Notes: a model not told the origin generated them from the letters alone. 64,000 bases of DNA from Lepidodermella squamata (GCA_047495785.1 JBLDXI010000059.1:310001-374000), one strand, 5' to 3'. Positions 16,023 through 59,420 are shown, numbered from the stretch's first letter. Made by a program: numbers and translations.

Positions 16023-16029
16023 TCTTCGC

Positions 16030-36474: not shown

Positions 36475-36721
36475 CTATTTGGACAATAGTTCGTCAACCT
36501 TAGCATGCAATGTTTCAATCCTTTTTTTTATCTCATCCAGAGCCGCTGCCGCCGGCTGAGCTTGGACCGGTGCCGGTGCCGCCTGCTGGGGATGAACCCA
36601 TGGGAAAGATGGAGCTGCAACCTGTAGCATGGCGGACATTGCCGCCAGCTGCTGCATGTTGGGGAGCTGTTGGGCGGCACAATTTGAGGCTCGATGGCCT
36701 GGTCGCCGGCATGCAGTACAG
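36475..36721 (-). other. Possible terminal exon of an unknown gene (Ala/Pro/Gln-rich plus short coiled coil)
   Basis: TTTTCAG acceptor at ~36722, GC-rich coding-like composition, coiled-coil-like LDEIKKRIETLHAKVDELL, downstream AATAAA. Confidence 0.3.
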
Positions 36722-36822
36722 CTGAAAATGAAAGAAAGTAATGAGCTTGTTTGTCATTTTTAGCGCGCTTATTGTACTTCCCGACGTTTCGACTGATATC
36801 TTAACAGTCATATTCAAGGGTT

Positions 36823-37560
36823 CATAGAGATCAGATTAACCAGAGAGGAAACTGATGCAGAAAAAATTCTGTAAAAATTCATTTCGCAATTTTTTCATTA
36901 AGGAGGAATTTTAATAATATTTGCCCTCCTCGAGCTTATGGGAAAACATCAAATTTAATAGTCAGGTTTCTTGAATTCATGATTAAAAAGCATACGATAT
37001 AATTCCTCGTCTCAGAAACAACACACCGCAAAAAACCGCATGCTCAAATCAGCTTCCCAAGTGGAGATATTTGCGATTAATAAAACCTAGTTTTTTCGAA
37101 CCTAGTTAAAACCTAGTTTAAGTATGCCTACTTTGAGCCCTAATAACTCGATTTATACGCAGAAGCCATCCGAAAGACTTATGCCATCTGATAGAGCACA
37201 TCCCAAACTTTCATTTCTGCTAAGCTCGGCCAAATCCCTGACCCACTTTGGAGATATAGCGAAACGAAATTTAAATATCTTGAAAAATAGACAAATTTTC
37301 GCGCATCAATATCTCCGGTTTGGTAGCGCTTAATCGAACGAGGTTTGCGTTGTCATGCTCGTAGTGAGACGCCGAAGAAAACTATATTTGAGTTGACAAT
37401 GCATAGCTCGATTTCAGTTTTCACGATGTGATGTGAAAATATGCAGTTTCTAGGTCATCGGCAATGGTTTGGAATTAAAAAATCCTTCTTAAAAAACTCA
37501 CCGACTTTTTTCAGAAAATTTTTGCATTGAGTTTCCTCTCTGATTAATCTGATCTCTATG
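36823..37560. mobile_element. P-superfamily-like MITE (CATAGAGATCAG...CTGATCTCTATG)
   Basis: ~55-bp TIR, CA..TG ends, 8-bp TSD CAAGGGTT. A partial left end recurs at ~9959. Confidence 0.88.
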
Positions 37561-39583
37561 CAAGGGTTATTCACATTTGCAGTTAGATTGTTCAATATTT
37601 CAAAACTATAAAAATGTTTAGCTACCGAATAAAGGTAGATTTTTTAACTAGTAAAAAGCTTAGCGCGAATCGAATCTTTTTGAGTGTTGATTGAAGGCTT
37701 CTTTTCCTTAATTACCAGCATTTCTTGAACCAGGCAGTCGAACTTAGAATTACATTTGACAACTACTTTGAAAAAGGAATCGATTTGTTCTACATCTTGT
37801 CCACAGGCTTGGTGATGGGTTCCAACCTTGCTTTTCTTATGCTCATCAACGCAATAGAAAGATAAGTGCATAATGGGTAATGCTATTTCAACATAAATAA
37901 TGAATTTGAAAAGAAACCACCACCCAACACACGCGATAAAAAAACTGGAAGTCAGGGAAGACGTGAAAAGCGGCTTTTGATGAAAAATCAAACTTGCGAG
38001 TTGAGTGCATTATTTTTGTGGCAGTGCGAAGATTTTTCTAGAAGTGAAAGTACGCATGCCCGCATGCCTGTGCCCGACGCGCCGTCGCGGCCCTAACCAG
38101 CAGCCGGCTGTTCGGCCGAAAATCATCAGCATCAAAAGTTTAAGTCTGCGCTTAATTAGTTTCTTCTCATCATTATCATTATATCACCACAATCGCGTCT
38201 GACCTACAGCCGAGATGCGTCTGGGGCGGGTTTTTTTTCATGCGCCTTTTCGCATACAGCCAGTATTTGGCAACTGGTAAGTGGTAAGGTCACTGAAAGA
38301 CAGCTGCGCGCGAAAGGGGTGGAGCTTTCGATGACAGCAACAACAAAACTGGCCAATCAGCGAGCAGGGCTTGTTAAAAAAAAGCGTCGTTGAAACGACA
38401 ACAAAATTGGCGTATACAATTCGACACCTTCTCTCCGCTCTCACAGTGCCCACTCTGCGTGCCCCGGTAGGTACTAATTTTTACTGCCTGCTTTTTACAA
38501 GGTGGCAAACTACCGTAAAATGAGGCAATGTTATATTTGATCTTTGCTGGTAGCCACCTGCTATCATGATGTTAATGATGATAAATGATGATAAAAAAAT
38601 AAGGAATTATAATAATAATAATAATGATAAGAAACAAGATTCAGCCATTCGCCGCGTATCGATCATTTGCTTGATTTTATTATCACGAGCTTTCAACACT
38701 TGAAACCTGATCTCTACAGTTCTGTCGGTATTTTGTCCATTTTACTGTAGTTTCTCTTCCGACGGTGTTGCTGCTCATTTTGCCGCCGTAGCTGCTGTTG
38801 CGTCGGCGTTGTCTTTGGTCGATGCCTGCGAGCTGGCGGCTTGACCCTTGTTTTGATTGTTGCTGGGGCTAGCTTCGGATTCTTCTCGGATGCAAGTTTG
38901 TGAAAGGTCGTCGGGGAAATCGATTCCCGTAAAATCAGTAAGTTCCCACTCGGGGATGATGGGATTGCAGATAGGATTGAGTTCTTGGGAACCAGACATG
39001 TTGCTAGCGTCGTTGCAGTAGTTTTTCTTGTAGTTGTTATGTAGTATGTAAAAATGCCTAAAATATTATTTATGAAAACGAAAAAACAATCATGATGCGA
39101 TTCAGTTTGTTAAAAAAATACCCTTGGCAACTTTTCTTTTATATAAAAAAAAGCATTGCAGATCACGCTACCTTTGAATTTTTCTTACGTTTCTTATTTG
39201 TTTATTATTTTTCAGAAATTTCGCGCGAATAAAAGAGCAACCTGGCACGACGTAGCAGGTCTAACGATGCCGATGGCCAATTTACGCCGTGTTCAACCGC
39301 CTCGCCTTCTTCAAAGCGAGTCCAGTGACGGCCATCACGACGGTACGCAATATAGCTCGGAAGAACTTGAGGTTGGTTTCTTGTTTTATCAGCTTTGCTC
39401 TTTGCGCTTTGAGGTTTTTCAAAAATGATCGCTTCGAGCTTGAAGCTCGACTTGACGCCTGCTGCTACTGCTAGCGCGTTACGTTTTTTCGTTCGATCAC
39501 TCGTGGTATCAATGCTTGCACGATTGCGATTATTTTTATTATTATTATTATTGGTATTTCTGTTGATGATGATGCTGCTGCTT

Positions 39584-39633
<50 letters not shown>

Positions 39634-40416
39634 GCTGCTGCATAAGCTACTTGTATCATCATCATCATCATCATCAACGACCAGCTCTTCGACAAAGCAT
39701 AGGCGATATGTCGCTAAACCTGTGATATGGACGGGTAGCGCGGGCGCATCTGGGTATTCCCTCTGCACCTCTGCATCACTCCTTGTTATTTCGTTCGTTT
39801 TATCATCAGGAATCAAGTCAAGGCACAGGTAGTCAGATGCCTCTGATATGTAATATTTGCGTTCGATTTGTACCGTTTTATTACAACGCGGGCAATAATT
39901 ATCATGCGCATGTTGCTCCCACTCGTGCCCTTGCTGCTGCGCGGCTGTCGACGCTGCGCTCGGCCCATCAGCTTGACCAGCAGCAGTACCCGCCGCCGAG
40001 CAAGTGTGCCACTGAAATGCAGCAGTAAAAACGTCGCGCCCACTAAGCCCACGCTGGCGTTGTCGAGCCGTGGTTGTAATCTGCTTATTACTAACGCAAC
40101 AACTACCACTGTTGCTATTGCTGCTACAGCTAACAGCCAACATTGCATTTATTATTACCGATAAACGATAATAGCAATCTGTCATCTGGCTGGCACTCAG
40201 CACCGTTTTACACTCGCAGCAACGATTAAGCTGCTTTGTACGCATTTCCAACATATCTCTAATAGCAGTGTGATTTTCGTAAAGGCTGCGAACAAAATTT
40301 TCGAGTGGATGCGCATAATTTATGCGATTATTAGATAATGATGATAAAAGTAATGAAGACGACGACGACGACGACAAGTCGTGATCGCTTCGACTTTTTG
40401 CTATCATTTGTTCGTA

Positions 40417-41033
40417 CAGTGCACTTTCACTATAACGAAATTTACCGCGCCACCCCAATTCTTTCGCTATAGCGGTTTTTCGTTGTATTGGAAGTTTGAT
40501 AAAAAAAATACATCAATTAGAACTATTTCAACACTGTTTTTCATTATTCGAGTCACCAAACGATAATTCATTACAGATGATATGTTTGGGCACTGATAAT
40601 GGCCTCCAAAGTTGCTTTTATTGCCGAAAATCATTTGTTGGAACCCTTTATTACCCAAATAACTTCTTTTAAAATAATAATGATGTCATGAATTGGAAAT
40701 CGGAAAAAAATCGAGAAATATTCTGAAAAATGTAACGCACGTGCTCACCCTACATGCGTTTTCAATTTAAAGACGTTTACATTCTCTCCCCTCACTCATC
40801 TCTCATATGCAACGCTTGAAATCTTGATTTCGTTATAACCTACAAAATATTATGGATTTTTTTTCTGAGAAAGCCATAAAATTCTTTCGAAATAGCGATT
40901 TTTCGCTATACGTATTTCGTTATAGTGAAAGCTTTCCCCATGCAAAACATGCAGACGCTGACCGAGCCACCCAGATCCTTTCGATATAACGGTTTTTCGC
41001 TATATTGGCGTTCGCTATAGTGAAAGTGCACTG
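40417..41033. mobile_element. Tc1/pogo (Tigger-like) MITE
   Basis: TA-flanked TIR CAGTGCACTTTCACTATA(A/G)CGAA. Removal restores the reading frame ...TQDLYEQMIAK. Confidence 0.92.
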
Positions 41034-41258
41034 TACAAATCCTGTGTACGCAACGTATTTGCAACTGGTCGCGCTGCTCCAGTAGAGCCAGTGATGCCCG
41101 GCGATGTTGATTTTGCTGTTGCTGCTGTTGTTTTTGTTGTTGTCGTGGTTATCTCAGCACCACTCCTGCTATTGCTTATATACTTTTTCTTGTTGTTGCT
41201 ATCTAACCGCTCAACAGCACCTTGAATTGAGCAGTAAGCAGCTGCTAATGGTGTAAGC

Positions 41259-41288
41259 CTTGTAAGGAATAATACTATTCCTTACAAG
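41259..41288. mobile_element. P-type excision footprint (30 bp) with 8-bp TSD, creates the stop of the helicase ORF
   Basis: GTGTAAGC [CTTGTAAGGAATA-ATAC-TATTCCTTACAAG] GTGTAAGC; perfect 13-bp inverted arms. Confidence 0.82.
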
Positions 41289-44200
41289 GTGTAAGCTCAG
41301 TTAGCAAAGTCACGTGCTCGTCAGTGAGTGCATCAGGTCTTATCATAGATGCGCAATCTTCGGCTTGCAGCAATGCTTCCAGCTGTTCATAAGCAAAAAC
41401 ACAGTGCAACAATGTATTCAACGCGCTCAATTGCGCGGCACCGTGATGTGGCATTTGTAACGGACGGCATAGCCTTAAATTGAACAAACACTTGTTTGTT
41501 CGTGCCGGCGTTGTTAGGCTGCTAGTGCTGGATTTTGTGATGCTACTGCTGCTGCTGCTGCTGCTGCCAACATTATTTTTAGGACTAATTTTAGCGCCAT
41601 TGCTCGGCTGCCGCGTTGCCGTGCGTGCGGCGTCGCCTGTGTTTTTGCGTTTTAGCCTCGTACCATCGTTGCTATCGCGGTCTAGCGGTAGCGAGCTGTC
41701 ATCATCACCGCTGGGACAATTCGACGCTTTTCGCGCCAAAGTGACATTTGTTGCGATATTATATATCATGGCCTCGCAGTTATTGCTCGTTTTAACATTT
41801 TCAACGCTGCTGTTGCTGCTGCGGCTGAGCTTTGATTTTTTACTTGCAACACCAGCCTGCTGTGCAGCCGATGAGGCCTCATCGGCGGCTGTACGTTTTT
41901 GTTGCGTGTTTGACTTTTTGGCTGGATGAATGTTGTCACCAACACTGCGACCGTAGCGAATAGTCACTCGTTTTCGCTGTGTCGGCGCGCCGGCGGCATC
42001 GCCAAGCGTCAGTGGGTCGTGATTATTGAAATCATCATCACTATTATTATAATTATTATTATTATTTTTACTGCTGCTAAAATCAGCAGTTGATTGGTCG
42101 ATGCTAATCGTTGTCGTATTTTCAACAGATACTTGGCGTATACGCCTAACTGTGGAGCCGCCGACGGCGCTTGCACCGCGCCCGCCTCTGCCGGTGAAAC
42201 TACCACCACGAGCAGCACCACGGCCTCGACCTCGGCCACCGCCTCGGCCCCTATCAGCGTGCGCCCGCGAAACTGTTGATACCACCACTGTGGGCAATGC
42301 CGAGGATGATTGTAGCTGCAGTTGACGCTCAACATCATCGCCGCCGGCTGCTAGGGTTACAGCGCTCGAGTCGTTCTCCTGCGCTCGCAAGCTAGCCTTG
42401 CTAAGGTACCAACGCCTGTCTTCGCAATTGATGACAGTTTTGTTACAACCTACTGGTGGCAAATTTATATCCGCGGCGTACTCTGAATAGACCGCCTCGG
42501 AATTGCGCATAACAGACTCGGCGAGGCTTTCGCGGCCTGTTGTTCGACGCAATCGGTCATATTCAATCAGCGCTAGTTTATTGACCATTTTCGCGCCGAT
42601 ACTACGGTCATCAAAGTTGATAAGCAGCAAGTCTTCAAGTTTACAGACTCGCGATAGCATGACGTAAGACTGAGCAACAGCAAAAATCGTCGGGCCCAAA
42701 TCTGCAATGACGCGTTTCAAAGTCATCCCCTGGCAGCGGTGAGCTGTCATAGCATAATTTAGGCTGACACACCACTGCTTGCGTTCAACTATCACACCGT
42801 TCACGAGTGGAAATCTACTTGTAACCGGGCCAATGTCGCATTCCAAGCCGTGATTGAATCTGATGCGCAGCGAAGCAACACGCCTCGGCTGCAATACTTC
42901 CACGGATGCGACGCCAGCAGTATTGTTGTTATTATTATTATTACTATTATTAGCTAACGATGATGATGATGATGAGCTGGTCGTTTTATGTTTTGCACAT
43001 TTGCGTTTGTTTTGATCAAAAGTAAACATGCGACGTTTGCGCTTCGCTGCCTTGATACCCGATGTTAGTTGCAACGTTGTTGTAGACGCCGTGGCTTTAT
43101 CGGCTTGGTTCATTTCAGGTATCGAGTCGGTGTAATTAATACGGACAATTTCGCCACATGCGCCATTTGTAAGTCCGCGCGTAAGGTCTAGATTTCTACG
43201 CAGCGAAATTTTAGCGCCTATTTTAAGCCGCAGCACTTTTTCCAAGCCCGCTGTTCTGGCGACTTGTGACTCGCCATCTTCTGTCAGCTTATTCAACGCC
43301 TTTCTAGCGAGTTCTTGATTGAAATTTCTCTGTGCATAAAATATATCTTCCGCTTCGAGCGTAATCATTCCGTCGTCACCGTTATCGCCGCCGTCGCCGC
43401 TAATGTTCTGCAAATTGTAAAGAACTGCTTCGTTTAGCTGATCAACTTGTGAATTTGTTGCAACAATACATGTCGTGTCTGGATTTTCAATCAAATAACG
43501 AGCTAAAATCTGCCATCGTTGTTCAACAGTTAGCTTGGTATTTTCTGCTAACAACGCACCCGCAGTAGCGTGATTGCTCTCGACAGTAGTAGTTGACGAG
43601 GCGGCGTCAAATTGCTCAAATTGCTGCTCACCTAACTGCTCAACTCGTGCGGTCACAAAGCCGTATTTTACGGCGTAGTAGTGAAAATCAAACAGACGTG
43701 TTAGCAAATGCTCGCGCCCCGGTGGTGCAAGAAGGCCTATGCGCGTTTCTGCGAGTATCTGTGCAAATAACGGATCGGCTTTTTGACGCATATTTATTGC
43801 CAACTCGTCGAATTCGAACGATTTCCACGGCGCTACTTCGATAGGTGACACGCCATGTAGGTTGTTAATAACATGGCCAGGTACATTTTCAAATACGCAT
43901 CCGTCATTTACGGGATTTAATTGTAGCAAATCACCCATTAAAAGAATGTGCATGCCGCCGAACGGCCGCACATAGTCATCCATGGCGCCGCCGTCGCAAA
44001 TTTCTCGCAAACGCTGGCTAACATAGGTGAGCATGACGTTGCTTAGCATGCTGCACTCGTCGATTACGATCAGGGCTACGTTTTTGTAAGCTACCCGCAA
44101 GGCATTAGCTAGTACGGCAAGTATCGACGTGTAACGTGGCGTTGAGCCATGCTCAACAGGCAAATTTACGCCCCGATGCACCGTAGTGCCGCCTATTGCG

Positions 44201-44766
44201 AATGATGCCTGGTCGGACGGTGCCATGGCCAACAAGTGCTTGCCGTGGCGCGATTTCAAGTAGAAGCGAAGCGTCGATACAAGTACGGACTTGCCTACAC
44301 CTGCATTGCCTGATACATAAATTTTAAGCTGCTGCGGTGGTGTGTTATCTGCAACATTAGCCGCAATATTGTTCACACGCGCGTCTGCTTCTGCTGGTGA
44401 TGATCTTTTATTTGCCTCATTATTATTATTATTATTATTATTATTTTTATTATTCACCTTGTACTTGTAAACAAACTTGTCGTGAACGCTTGCCTTGGGA
44501 CTGGCCCAATCGTTGTCGAGACGTTGCTCAACAACTGATATGACGCGGTCAAATACGCGCCGCTGATCAGGATTTAGCCTATCAATTAGCATCGTTAGAC
44601 GAGCCTCGGCTTCTTCGGCTGTTAAATTTTCGAAATCTTCATCTTTATTGTTAACAATCTGCTGCATCTCTGTTCCGTGGTTTACAGCATTAGCCGCCAC
44701 CTCGGTGTCACTCTCGTGAGCACCACTAGCGTCGTTGTCGTCGCTATCATCATCATCATCAATCAA
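41275..44766 (-). CDS. PIF1-family (SF1B) helicase portion of RepHel
   Basis: SGNAGVGKS, IVIDECSML, FGGMHILLMGDLLQLNPV, NMRQ, LRRNLD..GLTNG, YAMTAHRCQGMTL and QSYVMLSRV. Confidence 0.95.
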   Translation of the reverse strand: MIDDDDDSDDNDASGAHESDTEVAANAVNHGTEMQQIVNNKDEDFENLTAEEAEARLTMLIDRLNPDQRRVFDRVISVVEQRLDNDWASPKASVHDKFVYKYKVNNKNNNNNNNNNEANKRSSPAEADARVNNIAANVADNTPPQQLKIYVSGNAGVGKSVLVSTLRFYLKSRHGKHLLAMAPSDQASFAIGGTTVHRGVNLPVEHGSTPRYTSILAVLANALRVAYKNVALIVIDECSMLSNVMLTYVSQRLREICDGGAMDDYVRPFGGMHILLMGDLLQLNPVNDGCVFENVPGHVINNLHGVSPIEVAPWKSFEFDELAINMRQKADPLFAQILAETRIGLLAPPGREHLLTRLFDFHYYAVKYGFVTARVEQLGEQQFEQFDAASSTTTVESNHATAGALLAENTKLTVEQRWQILARYLIENPDTTCIVATNSQVDQLNEAVLYNLQNISGDGGDNGDDGMITLEAEDIFYAQRNFNQELARKALNKLTEDGESQVARTAGLEKVLRLKIGAKISLRRNLDLTRGLTNGACGEIVRINYTDSIPEMNQADKATASTTTLQLTSGIKAAKRKRRMFTFDQNKRKCAKHKTTSSSSSSSLANNSNNNNNNNTAGVASVEVLQPRRVASLRIRFNHGLECDIGPVTSRFPLVNGVIVERKQWCVSLNYAMTAHRCQGMTLKRVIADLGPTIFAVAQSYVMLSRVCKLEDLLLINFDDRSIGAKMVNKLALIEYDRLRRTTGRESLAESVMRNSEAVYSEYAADINLPPVGCNKTVINCEDRRWYLSKASLRAQENDSSAVTLAAGGDDVERQLQLQSSSALPTVVVSTVSRAHADRGRGGGRGRGRGAARGGSFTGRGGRGASAVGGSTVRRIRQVSVENTTTISIDQSTADFSSSKNNNNNYNNSDDDFNNHDPLTLGDAAGAPTQRKRVTIRYGRSVGDNIHPAKKSNTQQKRTAADEASSAAQQAGVASKKSKLSRSSNSSVENVKTSNNCEAMIYNIATNVTLARKASNCPSGDDDSSLPLDRDSNDGTRLKRKNTGDAARTATRQPSNGAKISPKNNVGSSSSSSSSITKSSTSSLTTPARTNKCLFNLRLCRPLQMPHHGAAQLSALNTLLHCVFAYEQLEALLQAEDCASMIRPDALTDEHVTLLTELTPCKE

Positions 44767-44820
44767 TCTAAATCAATCTAAATCAATCTAAATCAATCTA
44801 AATCAATCTAAATCAATCTC
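44761..44820. repeat. (AATCAATCTA)x6 tandem repeat between Rep and helicase
   Basis: 60 bp; keeps the reading frame but adds three stop codons. Confidence 0.95.
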
Positions 44821-46895
44821 GTGATTGCGCCACGGCTTGAACAGCATTAATAAGCTGTGGTAAAAATCCTCTTTTCGTTTGGACAGGCTATAGATTCTGT
44901 GTTGAATATACCACGGCGTTTTTGGCTTTTTTACAAATTCGTACTGACGCTGAGCTAGTGGCAAGTTTTCACTGCCAGCCACAGGCTTACGGTCGTACCA
45001 TGATGCTAGTTCGTACAAGCTCATGTTATCGAACGTATCATCACACGGCCGATTTGGATAATACGTATCTACCAAGTTGGTCGCAAAATAGTCGACGCTA
45101 TTCGGGTCTCGTTCTACCAGCTTGCACACTTGTTCGTATTGCTTTACGCGCCGCGATCGTTCACGTGACACATTGAGGTGGCGCACTTGGAATGTCGGCG
45201 AAAATGTGTACTGCGACTTTTTCAAGAAATAACTCGCAGCTGTCATTATGTTTGTCTCTTGGCATGAAAGAAATGACCCTGCCTCGCGCCACATTGCACC
45301 GAAACGGTTTTTACTCGCCGCCTGTGAACGCTGTCTGCGCAACGCCTCATCGCTAGTAGTAGTATTAGTATCATGATCGGTGGCACCACCACCACTACTT
45401 TTGCTTGGTGCATCGAAATTGGTAGCATTCGCAACTGGTTGCTGTGTTTCACCTTCGCCGCCGTGCATGTTAGCTAGTCGTGAAGCGTTCAGCATAGCGC
45501 GATGCTTCATGCTCATGCGATTTGGCTTTGTGCTATATCCAACGGTTACATAGTGGCACAGATTTTTGCTCTGAGTTGCTACGTATTGCACATCTAGGTT
45601 ACCAGTGTGCATAAGCAAATACAGCGAATTGTAATCGTTGATGCGGCATTCATTTTTGGCTCGCGGAAGCTCGTATGCTCGTGTCTTTGCGTCGCGCTTT
45701 GAACTTTGCATTGCGCCATATTTTTTAATCATGCGCCTATAAGCTGTTGCTTTTGCGATGTTATTGCGCTGGAATTTTTTCTTGCTTTCCTAGGAAAAGC
45801 AAACCGGCACTTGCGGCGATACCGAACGCCATTTCTGCCTGTCGTAAATGGGCTACAATAACTATTACAATTATGTCGCTGATAGCGTGCAACTTTTTCG
45901 TACAATTCAGGCGAGATTTTTTTATCAGGCAGCTCGCAAGTGATTGCCTTTGTTATGAATTCTGCTACTTTTTCAGGCTCATCTTTGTCGAGCAGCGGCG
46001 CGTTTTCACACCACAAAGTTATGTGAAAATGCGGAATTCCTCGCTGCTGTTCTTCCATTCGTACAAAGTAATGCAATATTTTACCGCCTAATGCTTTCGC
46101 CGCTGTTTCATGTACAAATTGGAACCAAGCTTGAAATCGCACGTGTATAAATTCGCAAGTAGTAAACGGGTCCATAGCTAAGTTTTGATAGGTTTTTACC
46201 CGCATGCTCGGGATTTTTCTCCCTCAAGTAATCGTGCAGATCGCGTATGTCATATTCTGACGGGTTGTAAGTCATGAAAAATGTAGCAGGGCCTAAACAC
46301 CTTAGTATGAGCTTTAATCGTTCACGCACCGAGTACCAATACTCTTGTGTTGATGGCAGCTTTGAAAATACCGTGCTCATTCGCGCACCTAGTGTCTCTT
46401 CTTCAACGGCAGCCAAATATTCTTTGGCTGTTAGCTTGTTAGGGCCGCTTGCTACTTGGGTATTGACAACTTGAAAAATGCCCGAACGAACGCATCTTTT
46501 CAAGTACTCGTTGTAATGATAGAAAATGAATGGAATTGATAGTCGGAAGCGATTGACATCTGCCAGCTGTAGCAGATGCCTAACGTAGTCAGCTTCACGA
46601 ATATGCTTTCGGCGAGAATTTCGAACCATTGTAGCGTAGCACTGTTCACTGGCGACGTGGATGTTTTTTCTATCTGGTATAATCGTTCCGAAATGCCACT
46701 CATGCGACAGCTGTGCATTGGTACAAGGCAATATTGCTCGTAATATTTGGCATCTTTAGCGAGATCTATTTTCCGCAAAATTGACTCACCGCTGTTATTT
46801 TCTGCGCCTATCACATCGCTGTATTTCTTCCATGTTTTTACTACGCTTTTTGCGCCGTCGTTTCTTTTTACGGCCGCCCTCATTCTTACTTGCAC
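44803..46895 (-). pseudogene. HUH Rep endonuclease portion of RepHel (frameshifted)
   Basis: Rep motifs spread over ORFs 46108..46731, 45729..46205 and 44803..45732, with 1-nt shifts in A-runs at ~46195 and ~45778. Confidence 0.9.
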
Positions 46896-47559
46896 TGCTG
46901 TTTTTACCTACTTTGTCATCATCATCATCATCATCATCATCAGCTGCTTCACTCGCTGAATTACCGCTGCTGGCAGACGCATCACTCTTATCGCTGCTGC
47001 TGTTGCTGTTACTGCTATGATGTTTTGTAACAAAATCTTCGTCATCATATTCTTGATACATTCGCGCATCTCCGCCTGGCAATTCATCTTCAATTTCGAA
47101 TATTACGCTATCTAGTAATGTTTTTGTTGGCAACCTCAAAATATTTCTCAGGTATGGATTAGCTCGCCGTGCGGCATTTATAGCCTCGCATAAATGTTTA
47201 AAGTTGGTCATATTTTCATATACTATTTTTCTGTCCTCTTTAGGAATAGAGCGCGTGAAAATGATCAGATATGGATCAAGTATATTATTAAGAAAATCTT
47301 GTCGCAACTTGTTTTTCAAATCGCCACTCTTGGCATTTGCAGTAGCTGCTCGACTGTTACGTATATTATTAGAATCTGGGTTGGCTATAACAAAAGGATT
47401 CCTAGTAAAGTCTGACGATGCAGAATTACAATCGGCATCACTTTCGGCTGCTGTGTCGTCTAGCAAGCGGTCAAAGTTTATTTCAAGATGATTTTCTAAC
47501 AACCTTTGATTTTCATTATTAATTCCTAATAAGCATTCGTCATTATCTTGCCCGCTTGA

Positions 47560-47995
47560 TGTTTCTTGTTCAACGTCAAAGTTTTCCCACTTATTCCTGA
47601 AAAGGTGTTCGGCGAATACCTGGAAGGGCATCGGAAAATTCCACGCAATAAAGAAGCTGTGACAGTTCGAAATCACGGCTTTTCGAACTGCCACCATGTC
47701 AGTTATTTCAAAGCAGACTTAGAACTTGGAGATTTTTTGAATCAGAAAATATATTCAGCACTTGAACAGAGACAGATTAAATTTTCCAAAATGTTAGAGA
47801 TCGACTAAATTGTCGCTTTGTTGAATCTGTCCTTTTGTCGATGAGAATGGGGACATATTCAAAAGAGGCGGGACAACTTGTTTCATCTGTCCCTTACTTG
47901 TATCTGTCCCAGTGCTCTCGTCGAGAGGCGGGACAAATTTGAAGAAGAAAGGGACAAATACCAGCGAGAAAAGGACGCGTTATTTTGAACCGGGG
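47560..47995. mobile_element. Probable TE fragment with GGGACA/TGTCCC repeats inserted in the RepHel N-terminal region
   Basis: Clustered tgtccc/gggaca motifs at 47828-47955; the minus-strand ORF breaks here. Confidence 0.4.
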
Positions 47996-50900
47996 CATTT
48001 ATTAGAGTGATCAACAGCGCTAATTGTTGATTCATTATCGCTGTCTTTACAAAAAATTATGTCGTCACCTTCATCCTGATCGCTTTGATCGCTTTGATCA
48101 GACCCTGCTGTTTCTACTTCTTGATCGTTATCTTCGCCCATTTCATCATTATCTTCTAATAACGCGGCGGATTTATCATCATCTACCCATGCATCGCTGT
48201 CGTCGTCATCGTCGCTGTCATCACTTGATTGATGCACGGCGGCTACTTGCTGCACTGCGCTATACTTTGTTCGGTTAAATTCGAGTAGTTCTTGGTAATA
48301 TATGTTCTCAGCTGGCTTATCGCGTGATTTTTGGCGAATTTTCGACAAACAAACTACTTGTTTGCAATTTTTAGCTTCTTTGCATGAAATGCATGTAAAA
48401 TAGCTCAAAGCTCGGCATCTGTTGTAGTAATTTATCATTTCTTGTCGAAAAGTTACGCGCAGCGCCTGCTCATTTACGGGCTGACGATTAGACAAATTAA
48501 CGCTACGAATAACGCCTGTCAGTTGCATCTTTTCGCTTATCAGACGATTGAGACCTTCGTTGCCGGCATCGTTGATCATTTTTTCTAAATTACCGATGCG
48601 CTTATTAAGCGAAATTAGCTTATATACACGGTTAACAATGGGGCCCAATTTTTTATAATAATGGCTAGAAATTGCTCGCAGTTTTAGTAGCATTGACGAG
48701 CAATAAGGCGCACAAGGTGAATAACAAATCTGCTTGTGGCCATGTGTTTGTTTTCTGCGGCGGCTTTTACTTTTGCGCGGCTTGTTACGCTTCGCTGCAC
48801 TACTAGCTTGCTCGTTCACGCAACCCTCAGCTCTTTCTTCATCAGTTTGATAAGTACATTTGTCAATGTTTTTCAAATATGCATGCAACTGTTGCCAATC
48901 GCTTATGGCATAGATTGATATTAAAAATTCTAGCATTACTAACCACGCGTCTGCCTCGAAAGGCATTACACATAGCTCCTTACAGCATTCCCAGCAAGCG
49001 ATTGGCGGTTTAGGCTCAACGCGTTTACTACGGCGCCCCATGTTGTTGTCCTTGCTATTTGAACGAGGCTCTAAGCGATAATTCGGATATATGCCGTGCA
49101 CCGCGCCGTTTTCGTCAATACTACAATAAATGCGAACAAATCTCTTCGTGGAGGCAAAATTGCTGCTTCCTGCACGGCCAATGGCGCATCGTTTTCAGCC
49201 ATCATCAGCATCATTGCTTCGTTTGACATAATATTATCAATGGTGGCGGTAGTAGTGCGCGATGGTATCATTGTGTCATAATTTGCTGGGTCAAACGGAT
49301 TGCGCTCATCCACTGTCTCTTCGCTACCATCTACGCTACAGTATTGTAAATGATTTAACGGCGTCGCAATTTCCGAATAAGGTGGTGGTGGTGGATCGTC
49401 ATTTTTAGCGACTTGGCGCGAGCGAAATATGCTCTTTCTCTCATCTTTCGGCAGGTAATCAAATTCGACACTCGCGCGGCTGCACTTATTAACACCGCCG
49501 CCGCCGCCATTTTCCCGTTCATACTGCTTAATTTTTGCGCAGAGGTGTTGATCGAGTGTATTTTGATAACAAAAGTATGGCTCTTGTGTTTGCCTGTGCA
49601 TGCTTTCGCCTAACAATGCCCTAATTTTATCCTCTTCATTTTCGACCGTAGTCGATAGCGGTATGGCTTGCCAAGCGATTTCTCGCAAATTGTTAGCTGC
49701 TTTTAGCTGTTGCTTCTTTAGCTCATGAAGCTCGTACAGGGTAGTTCGTGCTTGATTCTCGGCATCAAACTTGAACGTCGCTTCGCGTTGCTTTTTAGAA
49801 AGACGTGGCGTTGACACCGCGTTGTTTTTAATAGTCGGCGAGTTTTGCGAAATTTGCTCGTTGCCTAAAGCTACATGTTGTAATTGCAACAATTCACACG
49901 TTGTGTCACCCGCTATCATGGAAGCGCCACTGGAAGACTCCGGCAACAAAACGGCCGAGTTTTCTCGGTCGTCAGTTGTAACAACCGTGTCACGTGATGG
50001 AATGTCAGTTCTACTCGCCTGAGCTTCCGATTCATGTGTGCTATCAGCAGCAATAGCTACCTATATCTGATGGGCTGCCGCTCGTCAGCATTCTATTAGC
50101 CTTGTAGCCAAAGGTTCATGGTGAAATAATGTTCAAGCATTTATCACGGAGAACACCACGGCTGCTTTCACGGCGTTCTTTATCGGAGGCTGGTGATGAA
50201 GGAATAATATTCACACATTTATCACTGAGAACGCCAACGCTGCTATCACCGCTTTCTTTATTATTATAATTTTCTTGTCTCATTTCAACTTCATCTGCTG
50301 CGTTCGGCTCTGTCGGTTCAAAATATTCAAACACGCTAAAATTATCAGCTTCATTATCGTCCGGAAGTTTATCACAGGCGATACATGTGTCATCGTCATC
50401 ACTTTTACTTGTGTTTTCTGATTTTTTATTCTTCAAATCTTCTCTCATCCGATCGGTTAATTTTATTTGCAATTCTGACAATTTTTTCCGCATATCTCTA
50501 TTATAATTTCTGTTTTTTAATAGGCAAGTTTCATAAAAAGGAATTTTACGAAGCATCATAGCTTTCTCCACTACGGTGAGACTCTTGTCCTGCATGATGT
50601 CCTCAATTTTGCTGTGCCGCTCGTTTTGTCGTTTGCGCTTCCTTGCCACCTTGCTATGCGCTGATTTCACCGCCGCAGGGGAACTAGCCGGCTTGGGCTT
50701 GTCCTTGTCAGATGGCAATATCGTCGAGCTGTCGTTGTCATCACTCGAACAAGTGTCGAACAGAAAGTCGCTATCGTCATCCACCTCATCCTCATCTGTC
50801 ACGACGTGCCCGTCATTTTTACGGTTCGGTTTAACACTGCGTTTTTCATTTGTTTTTACGGCATCTTTCATTTTCTGACGCTTAGACGCTGATGCGCTGC

Positions 50901-51579
50901 CACAATAACGACGCCGTTTCGAAGCCGGCAGCGATTTCTTACCATGTTTAGCCGAGCGGCTGCTCTCATCTCGCACCGCATCTTCGCGTGATGATGACTC
51001 TACCGCGACGACGGCGATGCCATCACCATCATCATCATCATCGCTGTTATCGGCTTCATTCACAGCCGGCTCATAGCTGTCATTGTCACAATTTGACGCG
51101 AGAACACTGTACGGAGTTTCGTCTTCAATTAGATAGAGACCGGCCTCGATTAGATTGATCGTGTCTATCGATGTTCTGCCGCGACGTGTTTCGTTGTCGT
51201 TATTCGACGACGCCGGAATGCTACTAACCTTGGATGTCGCGCTGTTATCAGCGGTAGCACCGGTGTCTTTACGTTGCTTCCGACTACGGGTTGAACTGAC
51301 GACAAATTGAAAATCATCATCGGCGGCAGACTGACCGGTGCCAGCCTGTTGCTGATTACCTTCTTTATCAGCAGCTCTCTGGCGTTTCGTGTTCGCGCTA
51401 CTTGAGCTCACATCGCTCGGCTTGGTCGCCGATTTCTTCTCATTCTCTCGGCTTATGGCAGGATCACTCATCTTCGAGGGTCCTGAAAATGGCGGTCTGC
51501 TGCTGCTGCTGGTGACGCCGCCGGCGCCCGTTGAAAGCCCGCGAGGAAGCGCAGGTTGATACGCTCGGTTGTTCGCCGC

Positions 51580-53658
51580 CTACGAACTGGCGCTTTCGGC
51601 ATCCAAACGTTCGTACATGAACAAGTACGGCTGGGCGTCATACAGCCCGGTATTATCTTTATTCAGCCGAATGTTGTTATTGAAATCGACGACTACTGGC
51701 CGGTGGCTATCATCTGCTCGCCACCACAAGCCATCTCTGCGTCGCAAGTACACAAAGTAATGGCCGCTATGCATCGACCCGCCGCGATGGCAAATAACAC
51801 CTGACATGCGATATCGAACTCTGCTGCCATCACGCATGGGAAGGTAAAAGTACTCGTTAAAGTCCACCATTGCTGTGACTTTATATTCAATAGTGTTGAC
51901 AATTCTTTTGACGCCATTTGTTTCTTGGAAAATATCTCTTCTCATTGATCTTTTTTGTTGAATCAATAAATTTTCCGGGGCTTTCACAATTTTGAGTGCA
52001 TTTTTCAGCTTGCCACCGCATGCTAAACAAAAGCTAACTTTATCCGGGTAACACGGGTCTAAAATGGCGCGCAAGCTTTCGTCCATTGTTCGGTAATTCT
52101 TAGCTTTTACCTTCTCGCAGGCGTCAATCGCTACTGGAACTTGAATGTCATTGAAAATATTGCTAGGTGTTTGCACGGATTCACGGTTACACTGATCACA
52201 CACCGACACGCCAATTTGTTGCCCTGTAAAGCTGTTCAATTCCGAGCCTATCCAATCAGTGTCACCTAATAGGGCTGTTATTATGTCATGCACATCGTTC
52301 TGCTGCGATGGATCATATGTCAGACGGTCGGTGATGAGAGTTGCGAAGCCGTCACAAACGGGCGTTATATTAGGCGCCATGTCGCCAACAGAGTTGACAT
52401 AGCCCAGCACGAATTGGCGAAATGCTTGTCGCAAGCAAGTTTTGCGTTTCTCATTGTTATCGACAGTCAGTAAAGGCAGGCATGCCAAGCAAAAGCATTG
52501 ATTTGACTCGCAATACTTGCCCTTTACAACTTGTTCGACAAATCCTGGGCAATTTAACAGCAGTTGCACAACCGAAATGTCGCAACACTGAACGCTAGTG
52601 TTATTGCGCACAGGCAACAACTTTTGCGGTGTGTAATCAATACCTCTGCTGCTGCTGCTGCTGCTGCTGTGACTGTGATCATCTATAACACTGGCTGTGG
52701 CGTTATATGACGACGATGACGATGATGCTGCTGCTGCAGAGGAAGCCTGCTCATTTCGCTCAATTCTGTTAGCTCCAAAGCAATTATCGGCAACTCCTAT
52801 ATTACACGAGTTTACCTCAACAAAAACACCATTGACACGGGTAGTGCTCTCAGATGATTTTTTATTCGATTCAAAATTATTAATGTAATCATCATCATCA
52901 TAATCAAAATCACGATTAGGAGGCGCGTAAAAGACATCGCCATCAAGATACGGCAACTCGTCGTCATTTTCAGCATGAAAAATAATGCCGCCGCCACCGC
53001 AGTCGCCACTTTCCGTCATCACATTACTGCAGCTAGCATCAGACGGCGGTAAATCAATCAACGGCAAATCATCATCCTCATCATTGTTCAATATCGCAAC
53101 AGCCTCACGAGCGTTAGAACTAGCTAAACATTCCGGCTGCTGAGTGGCGCTCTCGGCGTTTCGCTCAGGCAGTTTTGGCAAGGCTGGCGATGCTGATGAT
53201 GATGATGTTAAAGGAAGATCTTCCGGCCCCATTGTGACAAACCTTAGAACGGGCTTGCTACCTGAAGCCTCTTCACGTTGAACAGGAGTCAGCATAAAAA
53301 CTTTCAATGCCTGTTCTTTGCTTTGGGCAATAGGTGCCTTCGAATTACATATGGCTAGTCCCAAATCGGCAAGTGTCAATCGAATACCCTCACTCGATGG
53401 ATTAGAAGGCAAACTAGCATGAGTGAGGTTTTGTTTAACCGCCTGCGCATAGCCTGAGATGCTAGTTGGCTGCGCTGGGAGACTGGCGGTAGCGTTTTGG
53501 ACGCAATTTTCGGCCACGTTTACAAATTCACCGCTGTTAGCCGCTGTTCCTGTTTCAGAAGCAACCGGAACAGAACTATGCATAGCGGCACCACCACTGC
53601 CCTTATGTGCATCAACATGACCGGCTTTTACACTTGCGGCTTGCGGGATTAGAACCAC
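51580..53658 (-). CDS. Ubiquitin-specific protease (peptidase C19/USP) domain protein within the Helitron
   Basis: Cys box NTSVQCCDISVVQLL, QQNDVHD, CDQC/CLAC Zn ribbon, APENLLIQQKR, His box GVICHRGGSMHSGHYFVY...WWRADDS, PYLFMYER. Confidence 0.9.
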   Translation of the reverse strand: MVLIPQAASVKAGHVDAHKGSGGAAMHSSVPVASETGTAANSGEFVNVAENCVQNATASLPAQPTSISGYAQAVKQNLTHASLPSNPSSEGIRLTLADLGLAICNSKAPIAQSKEQALKVFMLTPVQREEASGSKPVLRFVTMGPEDLPLTSSSSASPALPKLPERNAESATQQPECLASSNAREAVAILNNDEDDDLPLIDLPPSDASCSNVMTESGDCGGGGIIFHAENDDELPYLDGDVFYAPPNRDFDYDDDDYINNFESNKKSSESTTRVNGVFVEVNSCNIGVADNCFGANRIERNEQASSAAAASSSSSSYNATASVIDDHSHSSSSSSSRGIDYTPQKLLPVRNNTSVQCCDISVVQLLLNCPGFVEQVVKGKYCESNQCFCLACLPLLTVDNNEKRKTCLRQAFRQFVLGYVNSVGDMAPNITPVCDGFATLITDRLTYDPSQQNDVHDIITALLGDTDWIGSELNSFTGQQIGVSVCDQCNRESVQTPSNIFNDIQVPVAIDACEKVKAKNYRTMDESLRAILDPCYPDKVSFCLACGGKLKNALKIVKAPENLLIQQKRSMRRDIFQETNGVKRIVNTIEYKVTAMVDFNEYFYLPMRDGSRVRYRMSGVICHRGGSMHSGHYFVYLRRRDGLWWRADDSHRPVVVDFNNNIRLNKDNTGLYDAQPYLFMYERLDAESASS

Positions 53659-55094
53659 CGCCGCCGGCTAGCCCTTTGTGGATTTTTTTTTAAGAAACGA
53701 GCGCTTCTTTACTCTTACCAGAAGACGTGCGAGTTTTCGACAACTCGGCGTCAACTTCCTCCTTCCGCCAGAGAAACGCGCAAAGCGAAATTTTATGACT
53801 ATTTAAGTGATAGACACTCGCCAAACGCAACCTGTCATTATGACTTAAAAAACGCGACACGAAAATGCCTTCATACTTATTACTTATTATAACAGCGTCC
53901 GTAGTTTTTGGCGGAATATCCAAGAGTTCTGGCAACTTCAGTAGGTAAGTAGTACGACTCATTACCAAGATTAATGACGCTCAATACACCCTGAGACATT
54001 GCTGTTCAATCGATCAATAAATCAATCAGTAAAGCAATCAAGTAGCAATCTGGTTTAAAGAAGAGTGTTCTAAACACTGTATTTAGACCTGAATAAAAAC
54101 TAGCAGTAACACAACTACGCGCCTAGTTACTCGTGAACCTGTAAAAAAAAATAACCGATATGCGGCACAAAATTAGAAATATATCAATTATGCGGAAGTA
54201 TAACGTAAGTTGTAAGCTGAACAAATAGAATTCAGAAAGGAAATGACAATCTTCAAAAAGAATCAGTCAAATGGAGATACAATCGAGAAGCAAAAAGCAA
54301 ACTTTCAACAAGCACAAGTCAGCGAGAGTCAGCGAGAGGAACGCGTAACGGTTTTCTTTCGCCCCGCCGCGATGAGAGCCCCGAGAGCAAAAGCGAGGAA
54401 ATATTTTTATACCGCCAAAATAATTTAAAAAGTTTTGGAATAATAATTATAATGCAATTATAATTTTTAAATAATTATTTTTTAAAACAAATGTAGAAAT
54501 AGCTTCCTCACGGATCAGCCCTGAGAGCGCTTATAGAGCGAAATACAAAACGGCAGGGGGTACCTTCATTTTTAGAAAACCATGGAAAAATGTCCTTTGC
54601 GCGGCAACCCAAAAGTACAAGTTACCTGAGGAATTTTCCCAATTAACTTATACCATTAGATAGCTGAGATCATTAGCTAGCTGATGGTATAATTTTTTCT
54701 CGATATATCTCATTCCAAGGTCCTGGTCCTCGATCCTAAAGTTGGGTCATTTTTGGCGAAAAAATTTCTACCTGGCCCAAGTGTATATATAGGGGGTAGG
54801 GGGCAAACGGTGTGCCTCTTTTCTTTCATCCTGGGCTATGTCCCTTTCGCCGCTGTCCTTTCCAGACCCTCTCCATTCTTCGGAGGGCACTACCGTGCCC
54901 CCGCAATTTGTGGGCAGTAGGACAAGATATGTCTTTACCAAGGTCCGGAGTACTACACATTTCCAACGGTGATGTAACCATTGCTCTACTTTGTCTTTGC
55001 GATGTATTTATTGCGCTGTTTCCTTGAGAAGCATTCATTTTGGTTAGTATTTCTTCTAGGTTATTATAATATCGCTGCGTTGGTTTATTACAAC

Positions 55095-55598
55095 ATGAAC
55101 GTCATCATTTTATTGTCCTGTTTCATGAGCTTCGTAATCGATGTTTTGTCGACTTCAGCATCCAACATCATTTGTCGAAAATGTGGCTTGAATATAACTG
55201 ATTCCTCTTTGCTCTTCAATTTACCCTCGGATGTGGCTCGTGATGCCAGCGAGAAGCGCATGTATTACAAAAGTGACGTTTTGACTCAGTTATTTCGTAA
55301 CCCTCAAGGCAAATATTTCGAGCTTGTTACAACAACTCGAGCTAATCTGAAATGCAATAAGCATGCTTCTTCAGAGAATACATTCTTCGAAGGTTACGCC
55401 TGGACCCCCTGTGTTTGTCATCATTGCGGAGTATTCCATGGATGGCTTTTTACTTCGACGAAAGATCCTGAGGGCCACTGTGACGCTTCCAAGACGAAAA
55501 ATTGCGATGCTCCCACGGCTTTTTATGGTCTTGCGATTGATGATTTGGTTCATAAGTCTGATTATGATCTTCTAAAGGGCATCAAGCAGGACTTGTAA
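55095..55598 (+). CDS. Signal-peptide CULT-domain (cereblon thalidomide-binding domain) protein, intronless
   Basis: Hydrophobic N-terminus; CRKC, FRNPQG, TFFEGYAW, CHHC, HGWLF and FYGL match the CULT consensus. No LON domain, so it is not CRBN itself. Confidence 0.88.
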   Translation: MNVIILLSCFMSFVIDVLSTSASNIICRKCGLNITDSSLLFNLPSDVARDASEKRMYYKSDVLTQLFRNPQGKYFELVTTTRANLKCNKHASSENTFFEGYAWTPCVCHHCGVFHGWLFTSTKDPEGHCDASKTKNCDAPTAFYGLAIDDLVHKSDYDLLKGIKQDL

Positions 55599-56924
55599 CC
55601 GTCGAAATTTGCGAACAAATACCTATGAAGTGCATCTCTTGCATATTTGAAAGCTTTCAATTTACATTAACTGTGACTATCATTGCTTCAAAATTTTGTT
55701 TATTGTTCATTCTTCAAATCCATTCTGGACGCACATTTCGCGCGGAAGTTTTTCTATAAAATATTTATCTTCTCAACTTTCCACTTTTTTAGATTGTTTT
55801 TAGCGTTCAGTGTTGAATAACCGGCCATGAAAGTAAGGTTCAACGCCGCTATGTACCCGCGAATTCACTTGGCGTGCATATACGCTACTGATAAAAAGCT
55901 CGGCTTTGTTGCAGAGGAAACCGCCACGACTTCCATTTCCCTTATCAACGGCTCGACTAAGTACGTTTTTAATTGTTGTATATCCTCCCTTTACTTGCTG
56001 CAATTTACACAGAGATTATGATGGAAAAAACGAACTCGCAGCTTTGGTGGACATTGGTCAGTGCTTGGGCTTGCTTCCTAAAGATGGCACTATTATTCAT
56101 ATCACTGAGGTAAGTATTGATAAATCAAATATCGTTAGGGACGCGCCAAAACAACCACTTAGATGATTCATCGAACATACTTATGAACGTAACGTAATTT
56201 AGCTAGTACGTTCAGTTTTTTCATGACCTGAACATCATTCGGTTTACGATCGACATGCAAGCGATTTTACGAGTCGAGGATAATCAACAAGTAAGATATT
56301 TTACGATTTGAATTTAAAACGCGTGTACGATAGGGTCGTGAACAATGTTTACTGTCTAGATGTACCGTTAACTGGGGTGGCTTTGGGCGGTGGGTTGACT
56401 TTGACGTACCGAAATGGGGTAACTCTATTAGCATCACGTGACCTGAAAAAAACATACAGATCACATGAATTTATTCAATAAACCTTCTCATTATTTTGTT
56501 AGCCAATAACACCAATTTTGAACGTTTATTTGGCCCTAATTGCCTAGTTGAATGTGAGCCTACTTTGTGTCGATGTAATGTAATTTTAAGACAGCAATTT
56601 TTTCACCGGATTTCAGCCTCCTGTCAGGTTAGCCTCATGTTTAAGGTAAAAACAAGAACACAAGAGTAAAAAATTAATTTTAACAAAGCAAAAAATTGTC
56701 TCAGCTCTCTGGAATAGAAAGACATGTCGTCGTGTATAGCGACAATTGCACGGAAATCACAGTGAGCATAGACGAAGTGGCACATGTCGTATAAATGTAC
56801 ATTCTGAGGTAAAGCGAGGTTTTGTATGAACCGGTTAGCCGGCATTTCGTAAACCAAGGTAGAAGGTTTTGTAATACTAAAATCTCGCACCGCTACTTTA
56901 ATATGAGAATATATTGCATCGCGC

Positions 56925-58810: not shown

Positions 58811-58819
58811 GTAGACCGT

Positions 58820-59420
58820 CTTGTCTATTCCTCCAAGGAAAATAAGCCACATCCAACGGCTGGCTAATATGCGTCGAGGTTGGTGGTAGCAGGGCAAAAT
58901 GAATTCCGTGTTGCTCAACCAAAGCCTTGGTATTGATGTACACCGGTAGATTGTCGCCAATTAACACTTTGTGCCCTCTTTCCTTTTCAAAATACGGGAC
59001 AACAATGGCTTCCAACCAATCGTAAAAGATGTCACTCTCAAACCACCCAGACTTGGTGCAGGTGAAGTGCGTGTCCTCTGGTGCGCAGGCGCTCCAGTTG
59101 GAATATACATGCTTGCTCTTATAGCACACGTACATGGGTAATAAAAATCCGCTGGTGCTACCAGCAACCATCAGAGACGCCGCCGACTTGGACTCCGTCA
59201 TAACTCTGTGAGGAGTTTTGTCGTCCGCGGCAAATATAAGGAACGTCGACCAGGGTCGTCCTGAAGATTTGTTTCGTCATAGTTTACTAGGCAATCTGGC
59301 TCGACGCCGAGCAAAACTACTGCGATGTTGTTGAAGTTTTGACGAAATCTTCAGGCGACAGCATTGCGCGTTTCACATTCAGATTACTGCCGATCTTTTG
59401 TCGAATTCTTTCTCGATTAC
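58820..59420 (-). mobile_element. pogo/Tigger-like DDE transposase fragment
   Basis: NYDETN upstream, LLPMYVCYK, TKSGWF, KVLIGDN, LLPPTSTHISQPLDVAYF. Confidence 0.85.

Follow-up and report, generated by a model that had tools for sequence, protein, structure and literature searches.

A block of 14.7 kb on the minus strand of a 64,000-nt stretch of the Lepidodermella squamata genome (GCA_047495785.1 JBLDXI010000059.1:310001-374000; hereafter the window) is probably one old copy, now inactivated, of a Helitron-like element from group 2 (HLE2, the Helentron/Helitron2 group), more precisely from among those with a USP/UCH deubiquitinase (DUB). Eleven long open reading frames (ORFs), eight of them in one frame, run along the minus strand from 53968 to 39205, and Pfam finds three matches in the block: UCH, Helitron_like_N (split over two ORFs) and PIF1. 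The order on the minus strand is an upstream USP (USP-A), a linker, a Rep, a PIF1 helicase and a second, USP-like domain (USP-B). An earlier reading of the same DNA, referred to here as the original prediction, had proposed this order together with membership of the Helitron2/Helentron group, and both agree with our results, the order from Pfam and a custom profile for USP-B and the identity from the nearest relatives of Rep and helicase, which are HLE2. Its finer claims also held up: an upstream USP with intact Cys, His and Asp boxes (alignments with 14 and 70 USP domains), an acidic, Cys-containing linker (four ORFs), no apurinic/apyrimidinic (AP) endonuclease after the helicase, and a second USP-like domain lacking the catalytic Cys and His (Ser and Ser in a profile alignment).

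The element is identified by its Rep-helicase protein (RepHel). The Rep region (44803..46731, minus strand, as are all features of the block below unless stated otherwise) is of the two-Tyr HUH type according to Pfam, tblastn and alignment. Helitron_like_N (PF14214) is matched in two adjacent ORFs (46108..46731 and 45729..46205); motif 1, FFMTYNP, aligns at 46261..46281, and in alignment with HLE2 Reps PHFHITLW (46011..46034) is the HUH motif and HYVTVGYSTKP (45523..45555) the Tyr motif. A helicase ORF of 1163 aa (41275..44766; PIF1 PF05970, E=1e-19, and Pif1_2B) follows C-terminally; it shares its frame with the Rep-linker ORF, from which a tandem repeat alone separates it. Its PIF1-type superfamily 1 core lies at ~42544..44328, with Walker A at 44287..44310 and the DE motif at 44047..44067. 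The best helicase match is P0151, a protein with PIF1 and Exo_endo_phos (38% identity over motifs I-III) whose contig, L001, also encodes DUF6570 and Helitron_like_N, followed by P0152, which has DUF6570, Helitron_like_N and PIF1. Rep is ~36% identical to P0152 and L001 by tblastn and alignment, for an overall range of 35-38% across Rep and helicase. In a comparison by search score that covered HLE2 and cellular proteins, cellular PIF1s fall below P0151 and P0152 for the helicase, and a word-indexed protein search with the helicase returned distant relatives only. Sequence similarity of this kind places the element with the HLE2 group.

Exo_endo_phos, the AP endonuclease domain, is absent from the 1163-aa ORF and from the 417-aa ORF of USP-B even at E up to 10, and because it has no endonuclease the element is not a Helentron in the strict sense. 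The canonical Helentron (Rep-Hel-AP endonuclease; L001) is the best sequence match for both helicase and Rep and has the same order from Rep to helicase. Compared with L001, the element lacks Exo_endo_phos, has no detected DUF6570, and has ~1,400 aa extra before Rep and ~900 aa after the helicase. An RGG-repeat tract at 42217..42252 (RGRGGGRGRGRG...) lies in a low-complexity stretch between the helicase core and USP-B and could be a nucleic-acid-binding or methyl-arginine tract.

USP-A is encoded by a 692-aa ORF (51580..53658) that ends in a TAG (51582..51580). While the N-terminal ~340 aa are of low complexity, Pfam UCH (PF00443, E=4e-17, residues 353-682), alignments and an AlphaFold (AF2) model all delimit a catalytic domain at ~51613..52602, and a PDB sequence search returned USP36, USP18 and USP47. 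Motif searches located the Cys box (52573..52593), QxD (52285..52308), the His box (51748..51768), the Asp (51703..51720) and both CxxC pairs of the fingers zinc ribbon (52177..52200 and 52009..52029). When USP-A was aligned with 14 and with 70 USP domains, the Cys-box Cys, QxD, GHY and Asp were all kept, as was the Asn five residues ahead of the Cys; domain residues C19, N14, Q114, D116, H294 and D311 fall in invariant or near-invariant columns. The AF2 model was built from a 71-row alignment, reached a pLDDT of 78.9 and a pTM of 0.82, and leans on that alignment of USPs. Foldseek matched it to human USP1, USP18, USP7 and Ubp8 at E ~1e-18 and TM 0.6-0.7, and USP-A is accordingly modelled with the thumb-palm-fingers fold of the MEROPS C19 / Pfam PF00443 type. 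Judged by its residues and by this model, USP-A looks catalytically competent.

An exhaustive HMMER search of 1.84 billion representative proteins revealed no close relative of USP-A and matched generic USPs only. The best single-domain matches reached E ~1e-9 with ~30-40% identity over the His box, and the genomic neighbourhoods of three of them are ordinary cellular USP loci. The top rows of the search were gene models of pocket gopher, pigeon and plants with 2-10 tandem USP domains, whose scores are summed over domains; none has a Rep or PIF1, and they were rejected as relatives of the architecture. A word-indexed protein search gave no match to USP-A in a collection without the proteins of the L. 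squamata genome, and an exact look-up of the ORF in assemblies returned no record. Cellular USPs (USP36/42/17, USP18, human USP1 and USP7) have the fold and catalytic motifs in common with USP-A, but identity across the domain is ~17-25%, and we found no orthologous group for USP-A, which, unlike them, is set in a transposon. Having no close relatives, USP-A appears unlike a conserved housekeeping USP.

At the other end of the block, USP-B (~41433..39205) is supported as USP-like by a custom hidden Markov model (HMM), hhalign and ESM Atlas. Its N-terminal part lies inside the helicase ORF and includes the Cys-box-like QLSALNTLLHC (41401..41433), and its C-terminal part spans 39205..40413 (stop at 39205..39207); the frame runs from the helicase into USP-B once a 38-nt insertion and a miniature inverted-repeat transposable element (MITE) are removed. 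The HMM was made from 117 domains among the exhaustive USP-A search matches, and for scoring, the three coding pieces of USP-B were concatenated with an X at each break. It matched in four collinear blocks with 8.3 bits, a score reached by 2 of 2000 block-shuffles (empirical p ~0.001). These blocks correspond, in order, to the helix that follows the Cys box, to zinc ribbon 1, to zinc ribbon 2 together with the LKRF-like strand, and to the stretch from the His box to the YxLFY end. The profile alignment puts the first zinc-ribbon CxxC at 40201..40224, the second CxxC and LKRF-like block at 39871..39897, the His-box-like LPSYIAY at 39343..39363, FEEGE at 39301..39318 and the LLFYSRE end at 39220..39240. 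Comparison with the 71-row USP alignment by hhalign gave p=0.0013 on the zinc-ribbon-2/LKRF block at a probability of 18%. Further support is provided by the ESM Atlas feature search, based on a protein language model, where USP-B scored 0.92 and 74 of its 100 neighbours are UCH clusters; the linker ORFs of 373 and 300 aa, used as controls, scored 0.48 and 0.64 with no family. All three catalytic positions are changed in the profile alignment, Cys to Ser (QLSALN), His to Ser (LPSYIAY) and Asp to Glu (FEEGE). USP-B is thus best described as very probably a degenerate USP-type domain. An origin of USP-B by internal duplication of USP-A was not demonstrable, with no similarity between the two by BLASTP.

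RepHel is broken by at least five lesions, and USP-A is the sole long part of the block that looks intact. Relative to HLE2 Reps, the Rep frame has two frameshifts, near 46181..46252 and 45717..45789, such that the frame from ~46214 to 45789 differs from its flanks. We interpret these as frameshifts because there is no spare DNA for introns; short GT-AG introns at ORF junctions were rejected in Rep for the same reason, leaving indels. Each frameshift lies beside an A5/A6 run, and a sequence error is possible. Between Rep and helicase, a tandem repeat with a 10-nt unit in 5.9 copies (44761..44819) introduces three in-frame stops. Its start falls within the conserved residues ...PWRNHEIDL that close the Rep-linker, and both of its flanks are in one frame; since PWRNHEIDL runs into the repeat, a GT-AG intron at this position was rejected in favour of an expansion. 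Through the 38-nt insertion (41250..41287), a 30-nt palindrome joined to copy two of a directly duplicated 8-bp sequence, CTTACACC, the frame is shifted and the helicase ORF acquires the TAG at 41277 that ends it. The near-perfect palindrome and the flanking duplication together occupy 41250-41295, and the insertion looks like a hAT-type footprint or minimal element. About 210 nt past it, the MITE sits in the USP-B coding sequence (617 nt, 40417..41033, or 40415..41035 with its TA target-site duplication). It has perfect 18-nt termini, arms of 29 nt that are 93% complementary, and terminal inverted repeats (TIRs) that start CAGTGCACTTTCACTATA and are Tc1/mariner-like; the TIR has just two matches in the window, both the MITE's own. 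The frame continues without the MITE and one TA. RepHel is dead in the present copy. The lesions found include no nonsense codon of the substitution type, suggesting that the copy is a fairly young wreck. An alternative genetic code was ruled out, as the interrupting stops are a mixture of TAA, TAG and TGA.

The linker between USP-A and Rep (46795..51471) consists of four long ORFs on the same strand, of 451 aa (50116..51471), 292 aa (49071..49949), 373 aa (47980..49101) and 300 aa (46795..47697). All are acidic and Ser-rich with CxxC motifs, and none has a family match (Pfam for the four; ESM Atlas for the 373- and 300-aa ORFs). The 451-aa ORF begins at an ATG 108 nt past the USP-A stop in the frame of USP-A, and 8 of the 10 ORFs from USP-A through USP-B are in one frame. 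Poly-Asp tracts are found in every ORF of the block including USP-A, with 7 inside the block and 2 in the rest of the window on the same strand. Short GT-AG introns, considered for the junctions upstream of Rep too, gave no explanation for the frames over 50118..49197 or for two gaps rich in stops, 47982..47721 and 46797..46758.

Deubiquitinases in Helitron-like elements have been described in two studies. HELIANO (Li et al., Nucleic Acids Res 2024, PMC11417382; preprint 10.1101/2024.02.08.579435) lists Pfam UCH as one of 20 domains stably present in Helitron-like elements, near-exclusive to HLE2, enriched in subgroups c and d, found mostly in lungfish and axolotl, and located outside the RepHel ORF; subgroup b is the one enriched for endonuclease and Herpes_teg_N, and DUF6570 is proposed as an HLE2 marker. 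Erven et al. (Nat Commun 2022, PMC9741609) showed that VTD (tegument-like) domains of Helentrons cleave ubiquitin and NEDD8 substrates, reported that inactive VTD copies exist, found VTD and OTU domains within the RepHel ORF, and proposed that different DUB classes serve one role for Helitrons. USP-type domains in HLE2 were therefore already catalogued in 2024, and the locus is a further example with a twist. At the domain level this matches a refuting condition that the original prediction had set for itself, namely earlier cataloguing. The new DUB-encoding transposon lineage that it had seen is only partly supported: USP-type domains do flank RepHel, but UCH in HLE2 is already in HELIANO; what we did not find described in the papers searched is a dead USP domain fused to the helicase.

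Judged by the published description, the element resembles the UCH-carrying HLE2 of HELIANO subgroups c and d in its HLE2-type Rep and PIF1 and in having UCH in an ORF other than RepHel; the endonuclease, absent here, is enriched in a different subgroup (b). The HELIANO elements come mostly from lungfish and axolotl, whereas the genome here has introns of 49-62 nt and a sequencing run of ~213 Mb in contigs. The HELIANO text has no helicase-fused dead second USP, while the present element has such a domain and no detected DUF6570. The VTD/OTU Helentrons (PMC9741609) resemble the element in having a cysteine deubiquitinase upstream of Rep, and their active and inactive copies of one DUB fold per element can be likened to USP-A and USP-B. 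The role proposed for their DUBs is to prevent ubiquitin-dependent loss of transposition proteins. In contrast to these Helentrons, the DUB class here is USP (C19), predicted from sequence, USP-A is parted from RepHel by a stop, and the dead copy is C-terminal to the helicase at the position of the AP endonuclease.

A number of observations weigh against reading the whole block as one USP-bearing element. HLE2 termini are characterized by terminal or subterminal palindromes, asymmetric terminal inverted repeats and a T-T insertion site. We recognized no Helitron ends or terminal inverted repeats, only low-complexity pairs, and inverted repeats of at least 12 nt linking 53600..58900 with 36500..39260 are absent; no termini enclose USP-A. 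The proposed marker DUF6570 (PF20209) has no match at E up to 5 in the ORFs upstream of Rep, and tblastn with the L001 Rep protein, which contains DUF6570, matched the Rep part alone; the domain may be beyond detection through divergence. The locus looks single-copy. A DNA run contains one 5.9-kb contig (~47965..53910) with a word depth of 53.6 against 49.1 for the next flank contig, depth not being copy number, and no other pieces of USP-A and linker (49000..53910) at 85% identity or above. A second run, under a different organism name, has contigs 100% identical to the window, and its RNA nature is our guess. It covers 50686..51932 and 52904..54296 and less than 5% of sampled RepHel words, so that the USP region behaves unlike RepHel. 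The lack of termini, the single copy and the coverage by the presumed RNA run, with the fact that USP-A is the only long part without lesions, favour a different explanation. In it, the USP-A gene would be specific to the host lineage, or would derive from the element and now be retained by the host; it would adjoin a dead HLE2 copy and would not, or no longer, be part of a mobile unit. In addition, fragments in the run of a third organism are 86-94% identical to USP-A. By our own count of the differences listed, 7 of 11 in the catalytic domain are at third codon positions, while the N-terminal region has 8 of 19 there, which hints weakly at constraint. We nevertheless consider such a host gene unlikely. 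UCH is catalogued cargo of HLE2, the next ORF, co-oriented and in frame with USP-A, is 108 nt away, and no close orthologue of USP-A exists among the 1.84 billion proteins. By our own estimate, five lesions in ~7.5 kb would spare a 2-kb ORF by chance about one time in four. In the contigs of the presumed RNA run, the sole splice joint removes 62 nt (50824..50885), a GT..AG intron of the plus strand with a CTGAC branch-like site and a T-rich tract; at least part of the RNA over the USP-A region is therefore antisense to the element ORFs, and the contigs give no evidence for sense expression of USP-A. Since a USP-type fold is in frame with the same helicase and the spacing to the 451-aa ORF is so short, USP-A is unlikely to be a chance neighbour. 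From the UCH-HLE2 catalogue, USP-B in RepHel, this spacing, the lack of an orthologue and the shared poly-Asp tracts, we infer that USP-A likely belonged to the mobile unit.

The structure of the genes and the nature of USP-B allow two further explanations. USP-A may once have been the N-terminal domain of a giant polyprotein of ~4,500-4,900 aa (USP-A, linker, Rep, helicase and USP-B), with the TAG at 51582 a later nonsense mutation. This differs from a separate upstream gene in gene structure alone and is likened to the VTD-Rep-Hel-EN Helentrons. It would account for the shared frame of 8 of the 10 ORFs, for the fact that one in-frame TAG and then 36 open codons are all that separates USP-A from the 451-aa ORF, and for the precedent of VTD and OTU domains within the RepHel ORF. 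However, the TAG is 10 residues past the natural end of the USP fold and the ATG comes after it, 36 open codons are expected by chance in ~18% of cases (our own estimate), HELIANO puts UCH outside the RepHel ORF, and the frames and stop-rich gaps upstream of Rep would stay unexplained; we hold a former polyprotein to be improbable. As for USP-B, it could instead be a low-complexity tail that is not USP-derived and whose likeness to USPs comes down to some hydrophobic motifs and two CxxC pairs. Pfam, PDB phmmer and BLASTP against USP-A did not detect the domain, a word-indexed search of the same protein collection found no homologues, the hhalign probability is low, and a single-sequence AF2 model had a pLDDT of 36.6 with no confident fold; the support for USP-B is statistically weak. 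A chance resemblance is nonetheless quite unlikely, given four blocks in the correct order on the USP profile and UCH neighbours at a score well above that of the family-less control ORFs.

We favour a USP-bearing HLE2 copy in the following working form. The upstream gene would encode USP-A, a catalytically competent USP, and would be followed by a very long RepHel with the HUH nuclease and then the PIF1 helicase. At the C-terminus of RepHel, the AP endonuclease position of Helentrons, would lie the degenerate USP-like USP-B. If the active VTD deubiquitinases and OTU domains found in Helentrons are a guide, USP-A may act on RepHel, or on host proteins that rolling-circle transposition requires, removing ubiquitin or a similar modifier and so protecting these proteins from disposal that depends on ubiquitin. 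With all three catalytic residues replaced, USP-B could do no more than bind ubiquitin. The original prediction had named covalent Rep-DNA intermediates and the ubiquitination of histones or PCNA as further possible targets. A more far-reaching interpretation, which we regard as doubtful, is that USP is a third DUB class, after OTU and VTD, to be independently recruited by HLE2, and that the module was duplicated, with one copy becoming a helicase-fused ubiquitin-binding pseudo-enzyme in place of the AP endonuclease. If this is true, the USP-B fusion could steer RepHel to ubiquitin-marked chromatin or replication forks. As part of the same interpretation USP-A, alone intact and in a transcribed region, may be nearing domestication by the host.

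Repeated uptake of DUBs by rolling-circle transposons (OTU, VTD and, according to HELIANO, UCH/USP) points to a ubiquitin-dependent host step that limits transposition, and of these classes only VTD has been assayed. The locus provides a concrete USP-type example with an intact-looking catalytic domain that is open to expression and testing. Should the architecture recur in other copies, it would support convergent DUB recruitment and module swapping at the RepHel C-terminus. Being one broken copy, it is mainly useful as a starting point for surveying the family and for assaying USP activity.

The DNA of the window is rich in transposable elements and animal-type. Upstream of USP-A, the minus strand has a TATA-like box near 54402-54411, ~100 nt further upstream than the contig edge of the presumed RNA run, and short repeats at 54477-54990, with a depth of 170-320 (3-6x that of neighbouring DNA), are the first clearly repetitive sequence. 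A plus-strand ORF of 205 aa (54981-55598), divergent from USP-A and ~1.3 kb upstream, has a weak Yippee/Mis18 match (E=1e-4). Two OTU-like pieces, at 56925-57263 and 58500-59201, share the minus strand with the element. An NHYFS motif marks the C-terminal part, whose ORF has no Pfam match, and the N-terminal part (GRGDRFYEAL, with Arg at the catalytic Cys position) is in frame behind a pogo/DDE_1-like transposase tail. We rejected these pieces (56925..59201) as part of the element, given the Arg at the Cys position and the Yippee-like ORF and high-copy repeats that intervene. Downstream of the block, a MITE-like unit at 36823-37560 has 58-nt inverted arms, 81% complementary and 622 nt apart. 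Elsewhere in the window are a P-element/THAP9-like transposase fragment (444-1613), an astacin exon (8904-9902), a Ty3/gypsy reverse transcriptase-integrase (12537-16585), a zinc-knuckle gag-like ORF (19318-20295) and a Tc1/mariner transposase (60698-61584).

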